Sequence record: OZ195776.1
Length of the DNA stretch: 64,000 nt
Strand: one strand, 5' to 3'
Under the pieces are notes generated by a model that worked only from the letters and a program-made list of their open reading frames with translations, was not told the DNA's origin and ran no database searches. The translations under genes and the position numbers were made by a program. Positions 33,558 to 62,546 of the stretch are shown piece by piece; position 1 is the stretch's first letter, and every line of letters starts with the position of its first letter.

Positions 33558-36500
33558 ATGCCAAATCGATTAAAACGAGAAGGCGACTATCTACTAATCT
33601 TCCGCCACGATTCAAGTGGCGGAGCTGTATTTGGTAGTGACGCCGAAGCAAGAAGTACAGGTACGCCAGATTCTGATAAGTTCAGCGCATTAAATGCGCT
33701 TGAACATTTTCGTAGACCAGATGGCAACTTTCAATTCAAGTTAATATATCCAGAACATACGGACTTGTTCAATATATGGAAGCAGCAAAATAACTTTGCT
33801 GCATTCGATGTTGGCAATTATATTCGAAACGGCACGTTCGCGGGTGGACTTGGTGTGGTTGAGCACAACTACACCACAGGTTCGTGGAGTACTATCGAGA
33901 AGGAAAATCCAGGATCTTCGACGTACGTATTAGAACACCAACCAGGTGCGGCTCAGCAATATCGAATGGATATTCCTCAGAGTCGTTTAAAGCCAAATAC
34001 AACCTACACACTAACAGCATGGGTTGGTTTTGAAGATACTGCAGACCGCAACAAGGGCATTTTCCATGCTCGTTGGTATGATGGCAGTAGTAATCCGATT
34101 GCTAGTAGCTCACTTGAAAGTGGTGATGTTTATTTGGCAAACGGAAACTCGTATGTAATGGACGGAATTACTTGGGAACGTAGATATTACCGATTTACAA
34201 CACCAAGTTCGTTGGCTGATACAACCATGTTCTGGTATCTGGGTTATTCATCAGCATCTGGTGGCAGTCTAGCAGGTAAACGATATTTCACCAACATTCA
34301 GGTGTTGGACAAACCGTTGATCTACAATTACATGGGCGATTACACCGCAACTGCTGGTGGGGTTGTTGGATATGAAGCAATCGATATAAATGCAACAGGC
34401 AATAACTGGGGCGGATTGGAATATGCAACTAGATCGGAGACATTGGCGGATGGTTCGGTTGGAGTTAGCGATTGGTGGTTTTCGATCGGCTGTCAATCTC
34501 TATATGCCACTGACGATTATCCAGGTCCAAACTCGAATAAAGTCCAAGTTGTAGAGCTTTGGGTTTACGCACCATTAGGTGCTGCCGTAAAGCAAGGTGA
34601 ATTGTACGCATCTCACTTTTCTGAATCCAGTAGTAACCAGAATGTCATTTACGTGAATGGCGTTGCGACTGATCATATTGGTGGAAACCAACAACGACGT
34701 GGTCTTCCAATATGTTATCTAAACGACAACAGCATGATTACAGGATCTGCGACCACTCGTAGTGATGGTAAAATGTTCATCATTCGTTGGGATAGCAATT
34801 TAACGCACTTGACTACTCACGATTTCGATATGACCACTTCAACCGGACGAACCAATTTCGCTCAGGAATTGACAAACATCGCCGGTAACCAAGAGCTAGT
34901 CGCTATTGTATCTGCTGGTAATGTAATCTCGGATGCAAACGTCGATTCGACCATGGTTGGTTTTGGTGCAATTGAGTGGAAAGGTACGGACTTTTATTCA
35001 AAATACGATTATGGATATGCAGCAATCGTACGAGCGGATATGGGATTCGTTTCAGAACGTAGTCAATTTAACCATCCACTAGAAGAAGAAAGTCATACAA
35101 ATTGCGTATTCAATACGATTGACGATCTAGGTGATGTTGGTTTCGGTCTTCCGTTGCTTGAGGACATTAACACAGACGGAACTTCCGCGGATATCGATAT
35201 TACAGATGTTATGGAAGATCAGTATGTGCTGCTAACGTGTTTGGGTAAACGTTCGTACGCAGATGCGGCGGCTGGTACAAGTCGTTGGTGTACGATTTAT
35301 TGGAAAAACGGATCAACTGTAATTTCACAGAACGCGATTCGTATAGAATCGACAACGTTAACCAAATACCAATTGTACGCAAAGCGACCTGCTGGCGTCG
35401 ATGGCATGCACATTTGGTCTAGTGGATGTTCAGAAGGATTCAGATCAATTTACGAAGCTACGTACGAAATTCCAGCAACTGACAGAATAGCAACATCTCG
35501 AAATGGCATTTCTTGTAACCATATTTCGATTACTCCATTATCTGGAACTCCTTGGGAACCGGATTCGTGGTACCGAATGACTACAAGCAATAGTAATTTA
35601 CTAGCCGGTTTGCCAATATCGCAAGATGAACCAACGTCTGTTTATTGGGGTGATAAAACTCTAACAAGCAACAACGAAAAGTGCTACGTTGATAAAACAA
35701 ACGATGCTGGATCAACAACAGCAATTATTCCGTTTCCGGGTAAGGGAGTTCCTTATCATGTGAGTTGGTGGGTGAACTATAAACAAACTCCAACCGCAAA
35801 GAATTTATTCTTCCAATTGCGTGGACGGGATAGTGGTGGTAGCTACGTTAATACGATCGTAGATGCAGTTAATGGAGCGACTGGTTCAACGTACCCAAGA
35901 TTGCAATACGTCGACGGTACACAGTTGTCAGAAAATCTGGACAAGTGGATTTTGCTGTCTGGTTGGATTTTGCCTAATACTTGGTCACAAACCCAATGTA
36001 GATCGTTTGCCGCTCAACGAAGTTATTTCTTCGGAACAGTGGACAACATTGGTGATTTTGATGGTTTTTCCAATGGTATTGGTATCCACAACTCTACGTC
36101 TGAAACGACGTATTCTGGATTCTTCCAAGTACCAGATGACGTCACCGAAATTCAATTACGATTGGATGACCGTGATAATGCTGGTGGAACTACTGAATAT
36201 TGCACGGCGCTACCTTGTATTTCACAAGTTAAAGTAGCTGCGGCGGACATTGACAGAGCTTACGTTGAAGAAATGCAGGAATTCTGGGAATGGCGCTACA
36301 GAAATCACGACAACGAAGATACCGGTACGTACGGAACATTGGGGTTAACAATGAAGCCTAATGACGAAATCGAGTTTTATATACGTGGCGACGGAAATCC
36401 AGACGCAAGTCGTTGGCAGTATCTAATTGATGGCAATTCACCTAGATGTCATGTAGCATTAACAACTACCGATTCTTGGTCATTGTCAAGTCAATGGGAC

Positions 36501-36815
36501 TTGTGGGTTGATGGTATCAAGACGGTCAATGGTAGTGCGTTCAATCCACTAGATGGATTTATGCATCACGTTCGATTGGTCAACAAAAGCAGTTCAGATT
36601 TGTTGATAGAAACTATTGGCTGTCGATACAACTTCGTTGAGCTCAATACAATGTCGATGTGGGGCATGAAAGGTACATTTGATGGATCACCTCGTAGTTG
36701 GGAAATGAATGATGGACCAGATGCAACATTCTTTCAAGATCGTTACAACAAGACGAATATCACGCTCGTGAATCCAACAAATAAAAACTGGTATCGAACA
36801 GAAGTTCTAGTATAA
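33558..36815 (+). CDS. 35: Long tail fibre hinge/connector gp35-like with extra adhesin-type domains
   Basis: Follows gene 34; ILEI-like region (THDFDM...LVAIVS...FGAIEW...YAAI). Confidence 0.65.
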   Translation: MPNRLKREGDYLLIFRHDSSGGAVFGSDAEARSTGTPDSDKFSALNALEHFRRPDGNFQFKLIYPEHTDLFNIWKQQNNFAAFDVGNYIRNGTFAGGLGVVEHNYTTGSWSTIEKENPGSSTYVLEHQPGAAQQYRMDIPQSRLKPNTTYTLTAWVGFEDTADRNKGIFHARWYDGSSNPIASSSLESGDVYLANGNSYVMDGITWERRYYRFTTPSSLADTTMFWYLGYSSASGGSLAGKRYFTNIQVLDKPLIYNYMGDYTATAGGVVGYEAIDINATGNNWGGLEYATRSETLADGSVGVSDWWFSIGCQSLYATDDYPGPNSNKVQVVELWVYAPLGAAVKQGELYASHFSESSSNQNVIYVNGVATDHIGGNQQRRGLPICYLNDNSMITGSATTRSDGKMFIIRWDSNLTHLTTHDFDMTTSTGRTNFAQELTNIAGNQELVAIVSAGNVISDANVDSTMVGFGAIEWKGTDFYSKYDYGYAAIVRADMGFVSERSQFNHPLEEESHTNCVFNTIDDLGDVGFGLPLLEDINTDGTSADIDITDVMEDQYVLLTCLGKRSYADAAAGTSRWCTIYWKNGSTVISQNAIRIESTTLTKYQLYAKRPAGVDGMHIWSSGCSEGFRSIYEATYEIPATDRIATSRNGISCNHISITPLSGTPWEPDSWYRMTTSNSNLLAGLPISQDEPTSVYWGDKTLTSNNEKCYVDKTNDAGSTTAIIPFPGKGVPYHVSWWVNYKQTPTAKNLFFQLRGRDSGGSYVNTIVDAVNGATGSTYPRLQYVDGTQLSENLDKWILLSGWILPNTWSQTQCRSFAAQRSYFFGTVDNIGDFDGFSNGIGIHNSTSETTYSGFFQVPDDVTEIQLRLDDRDNAGGTTEYCTALPCISQVKVAAADIDRAYVEEMQEFWEWRYRNHDNEDTGTYGTLGLTMKPNDEIEFYIRGDGNPDASRWQYLIDGNSPRCHVALTTTDSWSLSSQWDLWVDGIKTVNGSAFNPLDGFMHHVRLVNKSSSDLLIETIGCRYNFVELNTMSMWGMKGTFDGSPRSWEMNDGPDATFFQDRYNKTNITLVNPTNKNWYRTEVLV

Positions 36816-36819
36816 CATT

Positions 36820-36843
36820 AAGCCCGCTCTTGCGGGCTTTTTT
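36820..36843 (+). terminator. Intrinsic terminator
   Basis: AAGCCCGC/GCGGGCTT plus TTTTT. Confidence 0.85.
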
Positions 36844-36847
36844 GTAT

Positions 36848-36940
36848 CTAAAATAACGCCGGAATAACTCCAACAGCGATTATTCCAAGTATAACAATTA
36901 CAATAATCAGTTCAATAAGTGTAAAACCTTTCTGGTTCAT
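36848..36940 (-). CDS. 30-aa micro-prepilin (type IV pilin alpha1-N only; not in track)
   Basis: MNQKG/FTLIELIIVIVILGIIAVGVIPALF with G-1, F1, E5, G14, P22; AGGAG RBS 7 nt upstream. Confidence 0.8.
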   Translation of the reverse strand: MNQKGFTLIELIIVIVILGIIAVGVIPALF

Positions 36941-37056
36941 ATAGCGCTCCTAATGCGTTCTAAAGGGTTCAAGTCGAAACTTGATTGATTTATCAGGTAC
37001 ACGTCTATAACACCAGTAGAACGGATTCTAGACGGATTAACAAACACGTTACTCGC

Positions 37057-37330
37057 ATTTCAAATCAAAATCAACCACGAACTTGGATTAAGCGCTTGCG
37101 CTAAAATCCTCCAGCTTCTTATAGTAGTTATTGTATTAGGGGTTTTTAAAAGGCTTTTAATAATTTTATAATTTATATAAGGGATGGTTTATAATCGCTA
37201 GTAAATCGATTTCAAATCAAAATCAACCACGAACTGGCGCTAAAATCCTCCAGCTTCTTATAGTAGTTATTGTATTAGGGCTTTTTAAGAGTTTTAAAAG
37301 GTCTTATAAGATTTTATAGGGTTTGTCAAC
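37057..37330. repeat. Long direct repeat with AT-rich tails (origin-like)
   Basis: 27-nt block at 37057 and 37209; 44-nt block at 37098 and 37237. Confidence 0.85.
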
Positions 37331-37405
37331 AGTTAAAGGTTATCTGGGTGCGAATTGCTGGGACAATGTAGGCCTCTGTTGATAAATACAAAGGTAATTT
37401 TTGAA

Positions 37406-37642
37406 ATGATTACTATTTACGTAATCCAAGGATGTGATAGCTGCAGACATGCTATTGCACTTGCTGAATTCAAAAAGGTTGAACACGAAGTATTGACTTT
37501 GGCGTCTGACTCCGACGTAGACCAATTGAGAACACGACACGATTTCAAAGGTCAGGTCCACGTTCCTCTAGTGTTTAACGAAAAAGAATACATCGGCCAT
37601 ATTCCCGAGTTCAAGCGTTGGGTAGACGCTCGATATAAATAA
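37406..37642 (+). CDS. Glutaredoxin
   Basis: CDSC, VHVPLVFNEKEYIG; GATAAATA upstream at 37381. Confidence 0.8.
   Translation: MITIYVIQGCDSCRHAIALAEFKKVEHEVLTLASDSDVDQLRTRHDFKGQVHVPLVFNEKEYIGHIPEFKRWVDARYK
37634..37641 (+). promoter_or_regulatory. Late promoter TATAAATA
   Basis: Exact consensus before the capsid vertex-like gene. Confidence 0.8.
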
Positions 37643-37693: not shown

Positions 37694-38614
37694 ATGTCTA
37701 TTTCAACGGTAAATGCATTACCGGACATCGTATCCGTACAGAAGCGAGTGTATCCACTTATTCTAACTGCGGTGGTGTCTGAGCAACCAACATCACAACC
37801 ACTTGCAACAGCATTTGGTCTAACAAGAACCGCCGATACCGATGATGGTAGTGGTTGGTCTTCATTCAATTTCCGTTTTGATCGCTGGTATACGCAGGTC
37901 GAATCAACAAAGCTGAAATCTGAAATCTCAACTGAATTGCTGCAAGATATGCGTGCAATGGGTCTTGATGAATCAGTAATCGAAGAAAACCTTGCTGACG
38001 AAATTGCCGACGAAGTGAATAAGAAAATTCTACGTTCACTAGACTTGATTTCAGATTCTGGTACTGGCATTACAATTTCAGCAGCTTTGGACAAATTCAA
38101 TCAAGGTCGTAATCTGTACACCGAAGTACATGCTCGAGTGGCTCAATTAGAACGAGATACTGGTTGTACAGGTACGTACGTAGTTGCTGGTGGCGAGGCG
38201 TTTGATTTGCTTTCTGGGTCATCTTTGGCTAAGAAAGAAGAAGGTACTAATCACTGGAGAATGAAATCTGGTTTGATTTTGGTACACGACAAATACTCAG
38301 CTATCAATTACATCAACGTTGGTGTTAAGAAAGTATATAACGATTTCGAAATCTCAAGTCTTGTATTTTCAACATATGATTACATGGGTGCGACTAGCGC
38401 AGGTGTTCAAGCTCCATTGGCGTACAACGTAATTGGTCAAGATCCTAACTCGTTACATCCAATCTACGGTGTTATTGCTCGTTATGCAATTACTGCAGCT
38501 CCTATTGATGCACCAGCTGGTGGTCAAGGCGTGCAGGAAATCGACTGGACTGCTTTCGATGCAACGAAATTCCAATCAAAACTATCAGTTAAATCGACGG
38601 TAACGATAGCTTAA
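37694..38614 (+). CDS. 24: Capsid vertex protein gp24-like (short gp23 paralog)
   Basis: gp23/24-like segments VSEQPTSQP, EIADEVNKKILRSL, GTYVVAG, P.YGVIARYAI; late promoter. Confidence 0.7.
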   Translation: MSISTVNALPDIVSVQKRVYPLILTAVVSEQPTSQPLATAFGLTRTADTDDGSGWSSFNFRFDRWYTQVESTKLKSEISTELLQDMRAMGLDESVIEENLADEIADEVNKKILRSLDLISDSGTGITISAALDKFNQGRNLYTEVHARVAQLERDTGCTGTYVVAGGEAFDLLSGSSLAKKEEGTNHWRMKSGLILVHDKYSAINYINVGVKKVYNDFEISSLVFSTYDYMGATSAGVQAPLAYNVIGQDPNSLHPIYGVIARYAITAAPIDAPAGGQGVQEIDWTAFDATKFQSKLSVKSTVTIA

Positions 38615-61735: not shown

Positions 61736-62546
61736 AGATAGCATTGAAGAGCTTATCGGTTCTGTTCATAGTTGCGGTACGCGCGACGGTGTTAAAGAAC
61801 TAGAAGGTCTTTTTAGCAAAAAGCAAAAGGAACTTGGTGGCAACATCACTCCTATGATGGCAATTCGTGTTAAGGATGCGATCAATACTCGTTACCAGCA
61901 ATTTGATGATATGGAAAGCGAGCGTAAGGAAATGGAAGCCAACAAGAAGAAAGATGAAGAAGCAGCTAAGATTCAAGCTAAGATGGACGAAGGTCTGTTT
62001 GTTAGTACGGATGTTGAATTCTTCAATCATGAAGTTCCGCTCGATGAGACTGATATCAGCGCTGTTTGTATCATGGATATGAACGCACGTGTACCTACAA
62101 AAGGTCATCGTGAATTGCTTGGTATGATCGAAGACGCCGCAGATCACGTTGGTGCAACTGCGCGAGTTTACGTAAACGAAGGTGGGGTTGCAGATAAGCG
62201 TCAGCTAATCGAATCCATCGCTCCAGAATCCGTGAAAGTGCTTGAGAAAGACTACATGGTTGCTGAGCTAGACCGTCTACGTGATTTAGGTGCAACGCGT
62301 GTATTTGCGTTTGTACCAGAAAGTCGTGTAGCTGAGTACCGTCGTTACGGCAGACATTTTCTTCGTGAAGGTCAACGTTTCGAAGTCGTTACGTACAATA
62401 ACAAGACACGCTCCGCTGAGATGGTTGAGTTCGTACGTAAAGATGATTTTGACAGCTTCTTAGAAGCATCCCCATTCGAACCAGCAATGTCGGAAGTGAT
62501 TTACGAATCATTACTGTTCGATTACGTAGAGGCAGAGACTGAATGA
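61725..62546 (+). CDS. Cytidyltransferase-like (TxGH) protein with N-terminal extension
   Basis: RVPTKGHRELL, VPESRVAEY, SAEMVEFVRKDDFDSF; TATAAATC at 61661. Confidence 0.5.
   Translation: MALKDSIEELIGSVHSCGTRDGVKELEGLFSKKQKELGGNITPMMAIRVKDAINTRYQQFDDMESERKEMEANKKKDEEAAKIQAKMDEGLFVSTDVEFFNHEVPLDETDISAVCIMDMNARVPTKGHRELLGMIEDAADHVGATARVYVNEGGVADKRQLIESIAPESVKVLEKDYMVAELDRLRDLGATRVFAFVPESRVAEYRRYGRHFLREGQRFEVVTYNNKTRSAEMVEFVRKDDFDSFLEASPFEPAMSEVIYESLLFDYVEAETE

Follow-up and report, generated by a model that had tools for sequence, protein, structure and literature searches.

The 64,000-nt window analysed here belongs to the 257,764-bp genome of Vibrio phage D479 (OZ195776.1), which was isolated from a mixture of seawater and oyster; the window begins at position 62,001 of the record. 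D479 is a T4-like vibriophage and a distant relative of KVP40. Our subject is a very short open reading frame (ORF) within this window, hereafter the micro-ORF, whose product has the beginnings of a type IV prepilin and little else. The local order of genes is T4-like: rnh (- strand), a gp34-like gene (+), a distal fibre gene (+), the micro-ORF (-), a 750-nt spacer, and then a gp24-like gene and gp55 (+). An initial annotation, made from the sequence alone, had placed the micro-ORF between the fibre-gene terminator and a set of repeats, and so it lies: the terminator's T-tract and hairpin lie directly against the stop codon (36848-36850), and direct repeats begin at 37057. The same annotation considered the ORF hidden. 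It is already listed in the record, as VPHD479_0163, hypothetical protein, and has therefore been overlooked rather than hidden. Coordinates of all features are collected in Table 1.

Table 1. Features of the D479 locus (positions in the window) and of related phage loci (names beginning with L denote other sequences, with positions in those sequences).
Feature	Position	Strand	Basis
Micro-prepilin ORF, 30 codons and TAG stop (VPHD479_0163)	36848..36940	-	translation, Pfam, TIGR02532, CDS annotation
Class III signal leader MNQKG; Gly(-1) is the predicted prepilin-peptidase site	36926..36940	-	translation and profiles; cleavage predicted
Predicted mature alpha1-N transmembrane helix, 25 residues, headless (F1, E5, G14, P22, F25)	36851..36925	-	sequence, alignment
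Shine-Dalgarno AGGAG, 6 nt before ATG	36947..36951	-	read from sequence
G+C-rich hairpin (36820-36839) and T-tract (36840-36847), terminator of the + strand fibre gene	36820..36847	.
Long-tail-fibre gene, 1085 aa, annotated 'hinge connector', convergent with the micro-ORF	33558..36815	+	annotation
gp24-like head vertex gene, divergent from the micro-ORF	37694..38614	+	annotation, similarity to KVP40 gene 24
Unique 105-nt region upstream of the micro-ORF, expected promoter site	36952..37056	-	motif scans
Two tandem repeat units of ~150 nt	37057..37318	+	repeat comparison
27-29-codon prepilin ORF, Cinqassovirus: Aeh1, Ah1	nrdB-nrdD
27-29-codon prepilin ORF, Chrysonvirus: phiAS5, avDM12	nrdB-nrdD
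27-29-codon prepilin ORF, Angelvirus: PX29, AsFcp_2	nrdB-nrdD
27-29-codon prepilin ORF, phiWae14	nrdB-nrdD
TTGAC/hairpin motif sites	L006 about 2400-2466; L005 about 2410-2477; L132; L133	-
KVP40/nt-1-type prepilin-like gene	L002:2874-3059	-	upstream of td; 27 other records alike

The micro-ORF carries a genuine prepilin-type leader and an alpha1-N helix without a head domain. Its translation is identical to the 30 residues quoted in the initial annotation. The five-residue leader is basic and ends in Gly(-1), as expected of a pilin precursor; it is followed by Phe at +1, Glu at +5 and a hydrophobic alpha1-N segment containing Gly14 and Pro22. All of the type IV pilin landmarks that had been pointed out (F1, E5, G14 and P22) thus fall within the predicted 25-residue mature part, where Glu5 is the sole charged residue and mean Kyte-Doolittle hydropathy is 2.82. 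The globular head is missing, as had been claimed, and so is the amphipathic alpha1-C segment: the stop follows mature residue 25. The ORF scores 41.7 bits against Pfam PF07963 N_methyl (cutoff 21.2; E = 7e-11) and 38.8 bits against TIGR02532 (cutoff 16.3). Among the 1,894 six-frame segments of at least 20 aa in the window a strict prepilin motif occurs once, and in 200 shuffles it never occurs; the micro-prepilin is therefore not a product of chance. The strong ribosome-binding site is likewise real, with AGGAG at a spacing from the ATG that is found at only 18 of the 2,279 ATGs of the window, about two-thirds of these 18 being real gene starts. A longer frame or read-through product was considered and rejected: the in-frame continuation beyond the stop runs for 9 codons to a TAA inside the terminator hairpin, and this stretch contains no remnant of a pilin head.

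ORFs of the same kind are present in other phages. A sensitive blastn search for the motif led to an intact prepilin ORF of 27-29 codons between nrdB and nrdD in seven T4-like phages of Aeromonas belonging to three genera (Table 1). It is annotated in Aeh1 (ORF040c, 28 aa) and in PX29 (PX29p038, as 31 aa), in both cases with a depositors' note reading 'similar to N-terminal ... pilin', and is unannotated in phiAS5, phiWae14, avDM12, Ah1 and AsFcp_2. When aligned with longer phage pilin-like proteins, the seven Aeromonas ORFs and that of D479 end at one column, all with P22 and F25, and the last four residues (PALF) are common to D479 and PX29. In its length (27-30 codons) and in having its stop two to four residues after Pro22, the D479 ORF matches this headless type. 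Conservation of the stop, raised in the initial annotation as a matter for comparison, is upheld to the extent that the seven Aeromonas phages use the same stop column; no close relative of D479 in which it could be compared was found. The concern that relatives might harbour a full-length pilin, which would make the ORF a truncated remnant, was not borne out: no relative carries a full-length pilin at the locus, and the Aeromonas phages keep equally short ORFs.

The Aeromonas micro-ORF is the best-conserved piece of its region, being 94-99% identical as against 57-79% for the flanks. In Aeh1 and avDM12 (L006:2467-2553 and L132:1567-1653) 86 of 87 nt are identical between flanks of 57-78% identity, and in PX29 the micro-ORF is 75% identical despite unrelated flanks. 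The near-identity of the Aeh1 and avDM12 copies suggests either recent exchange or constraint at the nucleotide level, and part of the apparent conservation of the Aeromonas ORF may reflect recent exchange. Nonetheless, across the three Aeromonas sequence types and D479, which are 25-40% divergent in DNA, the frame, the start, the position of the stop and the pilin landmarks are all kept.

Both sets of ORFs consist of leader and alpha1-N only, with P22 and a terminal F25, and both occur in lytic T4-like phages of aquatic gammaproteobacteria. The locus differs: the Aeromonas ORFs are situated in the early nrdB-nrdD cluster, with that of Aeh1 coupled to the upstream ORF via an ATGA overlap, whereas the D479 ORF stands alone between the fibre gene and gp24. 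Because the identity between them (59-64% of amino acids, about 62-64% of nucleotides) lies mostly within the generic motif, common descent is unproven, and we treat the Aeromonas and D479 micro-prepilins as analogues and as candidate members of a shared class. Just downstream of the Aeromonas micro-ORFs, on the minus strand, a TTGAC motif is followed by a hairpin and a TAAGAT/TATGAT motif, in that order, an arrangement that we take to resemble the early-promoter stem-loop cassettes of T4-type phages.

The D479 peptide itself has no close kin in the collections searched. Clustered at 90%, it stands alone among ~15 billion proteins, and D479 is the sole encoding contig. An exhaustive phmmer search returned 52 hits, none of them a close relative, the short ones being mostly metagenomic fragments or longer proteins; two that were considered as relatives, P0011 (a 48-aa ORF on a 2-kb contig) and P0022 (situated within a pilus operon of bacterial origin and resembling a split pilin), were rejected. 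The junction that holds the micro-ORF is not shared by KVP40 or the D527 group, and relatives anchored on gp24 (53% identity in IMG/VR, 50% in metagenomes) have no prepilin motif nearby. The D479 copy is a singleton. No other class III ORF was found in six pieces covering the 257-kb genome, the 30-aa ORF being the only one. The annotation listings, which cover the record up to about 103.7 kb and from about 125.9 kb onward and in which many products are hypothetical, include no pilus or secretion gene and no prepilin peptidase; at the level of annotation the micro-ORF is not linked to genes for an assembly ATPase, platform or peptidase. The possibility that the ORF was recently captured from a host pilin was rejected for the species sampled, where nucleotide identity does not exceed 72%: the best match to bacterial pilin 5′ ends sharing the same 16 residues is 58/81. 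The exact 16-residue N-terminus of D479 is present in no Vibrio species-representative genome.

Headless forms were surveyed in viruses and in bacteria. The viral scan used an eight-residue core against IMG/VR and gave 102 clean ORFs among the matches listed; the bacterial scan used the 16-residue N-terminus of D479 against one genome per species and gave 75. With the caveat that the two motifs differ in length and that some viral contigs may include host DNA, mature lengths of 30 residues or fewer were found in 7/102 viral ORFs among the matches listed and in 0/75 bacterial ORFs (Fisher p = 0.02), and lengths of 70 or fewer in 32/102 and 1/75, respectively (Fisher p = 4e-8); no bacterial ORF had a mature length of 45 or fewer (0/75). 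Nearly all of the 75 are full-length pilins of the mannose-sensitive haemagglutinin (MSHA) type from marine Alteromonadales and Succinivibrionaceae. Most of the headless viral ORFs among the matches listed pass the Pfam threshold and have plausible ribosome-binding sites. Headless prepilin forms thus look phage-specific.

Several individual loci deserve mention. A complete bacterial pilus operon from a metagenome (L228:2678-3184), with T2SSE, T2SSF, several N_methyl genes and Peptidase_A24, contains a 32-aa N_methyl ORF followed directly by a 119-aa ORF; the former looks like a split or frameshifted major pilin. Two IMG/VR contigs of 152 kb and 276 kb encode identical 44-aa ORFs (L009:2373-2507 (-) and L013:4512-4646 (+)) in which leader and alpha1-N are followed by a second hydrophobic stretch in place of the head (N_methyl 38.7 bits; AGGAGG ribosome-binding site). 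A further set of IMG/VR sequences (L021, L077, L099, L107, L093, L014 and L076) forms a recurrent viral mini-pilin family of mature length 59 with a conserved Cys pair near the C-terminus; L076 has a mature length of 70 owing to an internal duplication of about 11 residues.

Longer pilin-like proteins are also encoded by phages. A prepilin-like gene of ~60 aa (phrog_13280) lies immediately upstream of td in 28/28 KVP40/nt-1-like records found, and such phages regularly carry small genes of prepilin type. The gene is absent from D479, where an unrelated 50-aa ORF (VPHD479_0214) occupies the slot. Of the PHROG families, phrog_13280 matches the D479 peptide best (34.5 bits); it too has a class III signal, and its phages belong to the same broad group and infect the same host genus. 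The D479 peptide does not align along the full length of the family: the match covers profile positions 1-23 of 67, as compared with positions 1-61 (127 bits) for nt-1 ORF295. The KVP40-type protein lacks P22 and has a Cys-containing tail of ~35 residues, whereas the D479 peptide has no tail. Elsewhere, phages of the 44RR/31 group encode a 72-aa prepilin-like protein, and some Vibrio siphophages and cyanophages encode pilin-like proteins of 117-136 aa. Of the six pilin-like families in PHROGs, five have unknown function, and no family is devoted to headless forms.

Among bacterial proteins, MSHA-type pilins share with the D479 peptide the leader, F1, E5, G14 and P22, and are identical to it at 18-20 of 25 mature residues; they differ in continuing for 111-200 residues with a head and in being encoded in pilus operons. 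The likeness to Vibrio MshA suggested by the initial annotation holds in so far as an MshA structure (PDB 9lab_B, 27.4 bits) is among the best named matches, but Geobacter pilins do equally well (27-28 bits), and the likeness therefore does not appear to be specific to MshA. PilA (9laa) scores 23.6 bits, and partial matches to the NCBIfam models for GspH, PpdD, GspG and ComG are all similar.

Truncated phage pilins are less new than had been assumed, having been flagged both by the depositors of Aeh1 and PX29 and by Sztanko et al. (Cell Rep 2026; PMC12952977). The latter authors describe prophage FimU-like pilins (P-FimU) that block tip-binding phages, and a truncated PilA of ~60 residues in six virulent Pseudomonas phages, for which they suggest incorporation into the pilus or inhibition of assembly; protection against pilus-dependent phages is shown for P-FimU, and proposed for the truncated PilA, which might inhibit assembly or the binding of phage. 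The phages encoding PilA-like proteins are not temperate (PMC12952977). The truncated PilA is, like the D479 peptide, phage-encoded and pilin-like; comparing by description, it is about twice as long. P-FimU is a full-length pilin that replaces a host subunit and leaves the pilus unimpaired (PMC12952977), whereas the D479 peptide is headless. What is new here is the extreme, alpha1-N-only form; phage-encoded pilin-like proteins as a kind had been noticed in passing by annotators and in one recent paper.

What might such a peptide do? The reading we tentatively favour, with confidence somewhat short of even, is that the micro-ORF encodes an expressed mimic of the pilin helix that disturbs the function of type IV pili, of MSHA pili or of the type II secretion system (T2SS). 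We infer expression, processing, target and benefit alike from sequence. The basic leader and hydrophobic helix would direct insertion into the host inner membrane in the manner of a pilin or pseudopilin precursor, and a host prepilin peptidase of the PilD/VcpD type would cut after Gly(-1) to leave the 25-residue alpha1-N peptide. Alpha1-N is the segment by which pilins enter and reside in the membrane pool, are recognised by the peptidase and pack together in the core of the filament. Lacking a head, the D479 peptide could not build a normal filament; it might instead mimic the membrane pool of pilins and compete for prepilin peptidase, sit on or poison both the assembly platform and the base of the growing filament, and/or spoof sensors that read pilin levels by intramembrane contacts. 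Infected cells would then bear fewer or non-functional type IV filaments (MSHA, other type IV pili, possibly the T2SS pseudopilus), and the phage could benefit through superinfection exclusion or less wasteful adsorption.

Published work lends this reading some plausibility. Caulobacter PilA is an Flp-type (Tad/Cpa-class) pilin. The defect of a pilA deletion can be rescued with PilA shortened to 17, 25 or 37 mature residues, and the helix of 17 or 25 residues alone signals through PleC (Del Medico et al., PNAS 2020; PMC7196804). A synthetic peptide comprising the 17-residue PilA helix ('CIP') reduced phiCbK susceptibility by 77% and attachment by 71% (PMC7196804). CIP is, like the D479 peptide, a pilin N-terminal helix without a head, though the bioactivity is that of CIP (PMC7196804); CIP is moreover a laboratory fragment of a bacterial pilin that acts via PleC, whereas the D479 peptide is encoded by a natural phage gene. 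We know of no sensor homologous to PleC in the D479 host. The Pf phage inhibitor of pili is reportedly not pilin-like and binds a component of the machinery. PMC8764522 describes it as a small protein that shuts down type IV pili and prevents superinfection, and PMC6058289, citing Kilmury and Burrows (2016), mentions regulation of PilS by pilins through intramembrane contact. The idea of a dominant-negative pilin or peptidase decoy, put forward in the initial annotation, may be right by analogy with the phage pilins of PMC12952977 and the Caulobacter constructs of PMC7196804.

A number of observations weigh against the pilin-mimic reading. Headless phage prepilins are known from genes alone; the D479 copy is a singleton whose gp24-anchored relatives are only 50-53% identical; and the D479 record states neither the isolation host nor its pilus systems. 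The N-terminus does not identify a target, given that GspH, PpdD, GspG, ComG and MshA score alike. The near-identity of the Aeh1 and avDM12 copies at the nucleotide level exceeds what selection on a protein would need. The micro-ORF lies at a break in synteny, KVP40 and D527 carrying nrdH and other genes, rather than fibre genes, upstream of gp24, and its stop codon touches the T-tract of the fibre-gene terminator, a place where truncated leftovers could arise. Finally, no convincing promoter was found, just relaxed late-type motifs: in 36952-37056 there is no match to the sigma-70 consensus, and one relaxed late-type motif, GATAAATC, starts at 36994, 54 nt upstream of the ATG. One sigma-70 consensus hit sits inside the micro-ORF and is irrelevant as its promoter.

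One alternative, which we judge unlikely, is that the product is a generic small membrane peptide whose prepilin-type leader serves only as a device for insertion and topology, with the pilus machinery uninvolved. It might act, for example, on the membrane, on the timing of lysis, or by blocking DNA entry in the manner of an Imm-type exclusion factor. In its favour, small membrane proteins are numerous among the products of T4-like phages, the mature segment predicted here amounts to one highly hydrophobic helix with a single charge, and three viral headless ORFs (L078, L034 and L036) keep the leader and E5 but have tails that are not pilin-like. However, the D479 and Aeromonas forms keep G(-1), F1, E5, G14 and P22, a set that goes beyond mere hydrophobicity, and their N_methyl scores are far above threshold; an arbitrary transmembrane helix needs no such landmarks.

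It is also improbable, in our estimation, that the micro-ORF is a non-functional remnant: the opening part of a pilin gene or phage mini-pilin gene that was captured and then severed when a recent recombination brought in the tail-fibre module with its terminator, any gene-like look being owed to that recency. The synteny break relative to KVP40 and D527, the stop codon directly adjoining the T-tract, the lack of measurable conservation in a singleton and the lack of a clear promoter are all as this account would have them. Yet the start codon and strong ribosome-binding site are intact, the 9 codons that separate the stop from the TAA in the hairpin retain no pilin head, and among the species sampled no pilin gene of bacteria exceeds 72% nucleotide identity. 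In addition, the stop column coincides with that of seven independently conserved Aeromonas-phage micro-ORFs, down to the PALF shared with PX29, and a random cut in a pilin of 130-160 aa would hit that position about 2% of the time.

Least probable is that the conserved entity is DNA or RNA (an island for recombination or module shuffling, or a regulatory signal) in which the reading frame is incidental: the single difference in 87 nt between Aeh1 and avDM12 amid divergent flanks, the promoter-stem-loop motif after the Aeromonas ORFs and the position of the D479 ORF between a terminator and a dispersed repeat cassette would suit it, but frame, start, stop position and landmarks persist through 25-40% DNA divergence, and an RNA element was rejected as the principal explanation since a search of the micro-ORF region against Rfam gave only sub-threshold terminator-like matches and the RNA fold is unexceptional (z = -1.9).

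Returning to the pilin-helix mimic, a more general version would hold that headless prepilins are recurrent, phage-specific mimics of the pilin pool, peptides of about 25 residues that are processed by the host peptidase and then both jam filament assembly and spoof the intramembrane sensing of pilins. This we consider possible but doubtful. Were it true, lytic T4-like phages of Vibrio and Aeromonas, along with other large phages, would possess a minimal, machinery-agnostic switch that strips infected cells of pili or pseudopili, with the D479 gene among its smallest natural examples. If the D479 peptide is indeed produced and processed, it would rank with the smallest phage factors known for host takeover or exclusion, and the synthetic helix peptide by which pilus function is suppressed in Caulobacter would have an equivalent in nature. 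Phages would then be seen to exploit the one segment common to all type IV pilins and pseudopilins, and a single tiny gene could act at once on the pili of adhesion and competence and on type II secretion. This would help to account for the fixation of small pilin-like ORFs in KVP40-like phages and in T4-like phages of Aeromonas. Gene callers set length limits that headless prepilin ORFs barely reach or fall short of; five of the Aeromonas copies are unannotated, and annotations are therefore an incomplete guide to the distribution of such ORFs.

The surroundings of the micro-ORF show some further features. The terminator hairpin of the fibre gene also lies 8 nt beyond the micro-ORF stop on the - strand, where, judging from sequence and RNA fold, its U-tract is weaker. 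Upstream, the tandem repeat had been described as origin-like, a description that we do not retain. Its 43-nt core, D1, recurs in D479 at three further intergenic sites (record positions 33870-33912 (-), 175458-175500 (+) and 227983-228025 (-)), where it differs by no more than 2 substitutions, and at every site it is oriented like the gene that comes next downstream. Its appearance is that of a regulatory cassette dispersed through the genome; it does not look like an origin and is not demonstrably one. Given this orientation, the copy at 37057-37318 serves the + strand, and D1 was rejected as a part of the micro-prepilin feature. Two annotated mini-ORFs, VPHD479_0164 (36985-37104 (+), 39 aa) and VPHD479_0165 (37340-37429 (-)), overlap the promoter and repeat spacer; neither has motif or ribosome-binding-site evidence and both are probably spurious gene calls. 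The gp24-like gene is annotated as 'major head protein', and its similarity to KVP40 gene 24 points to a vertex protein. It is preceded at a distance of 53 nt by a canonical T4 late promoter, TATAAATA, at 37634-37641, one of only two exact occurrences of this motif in the window.

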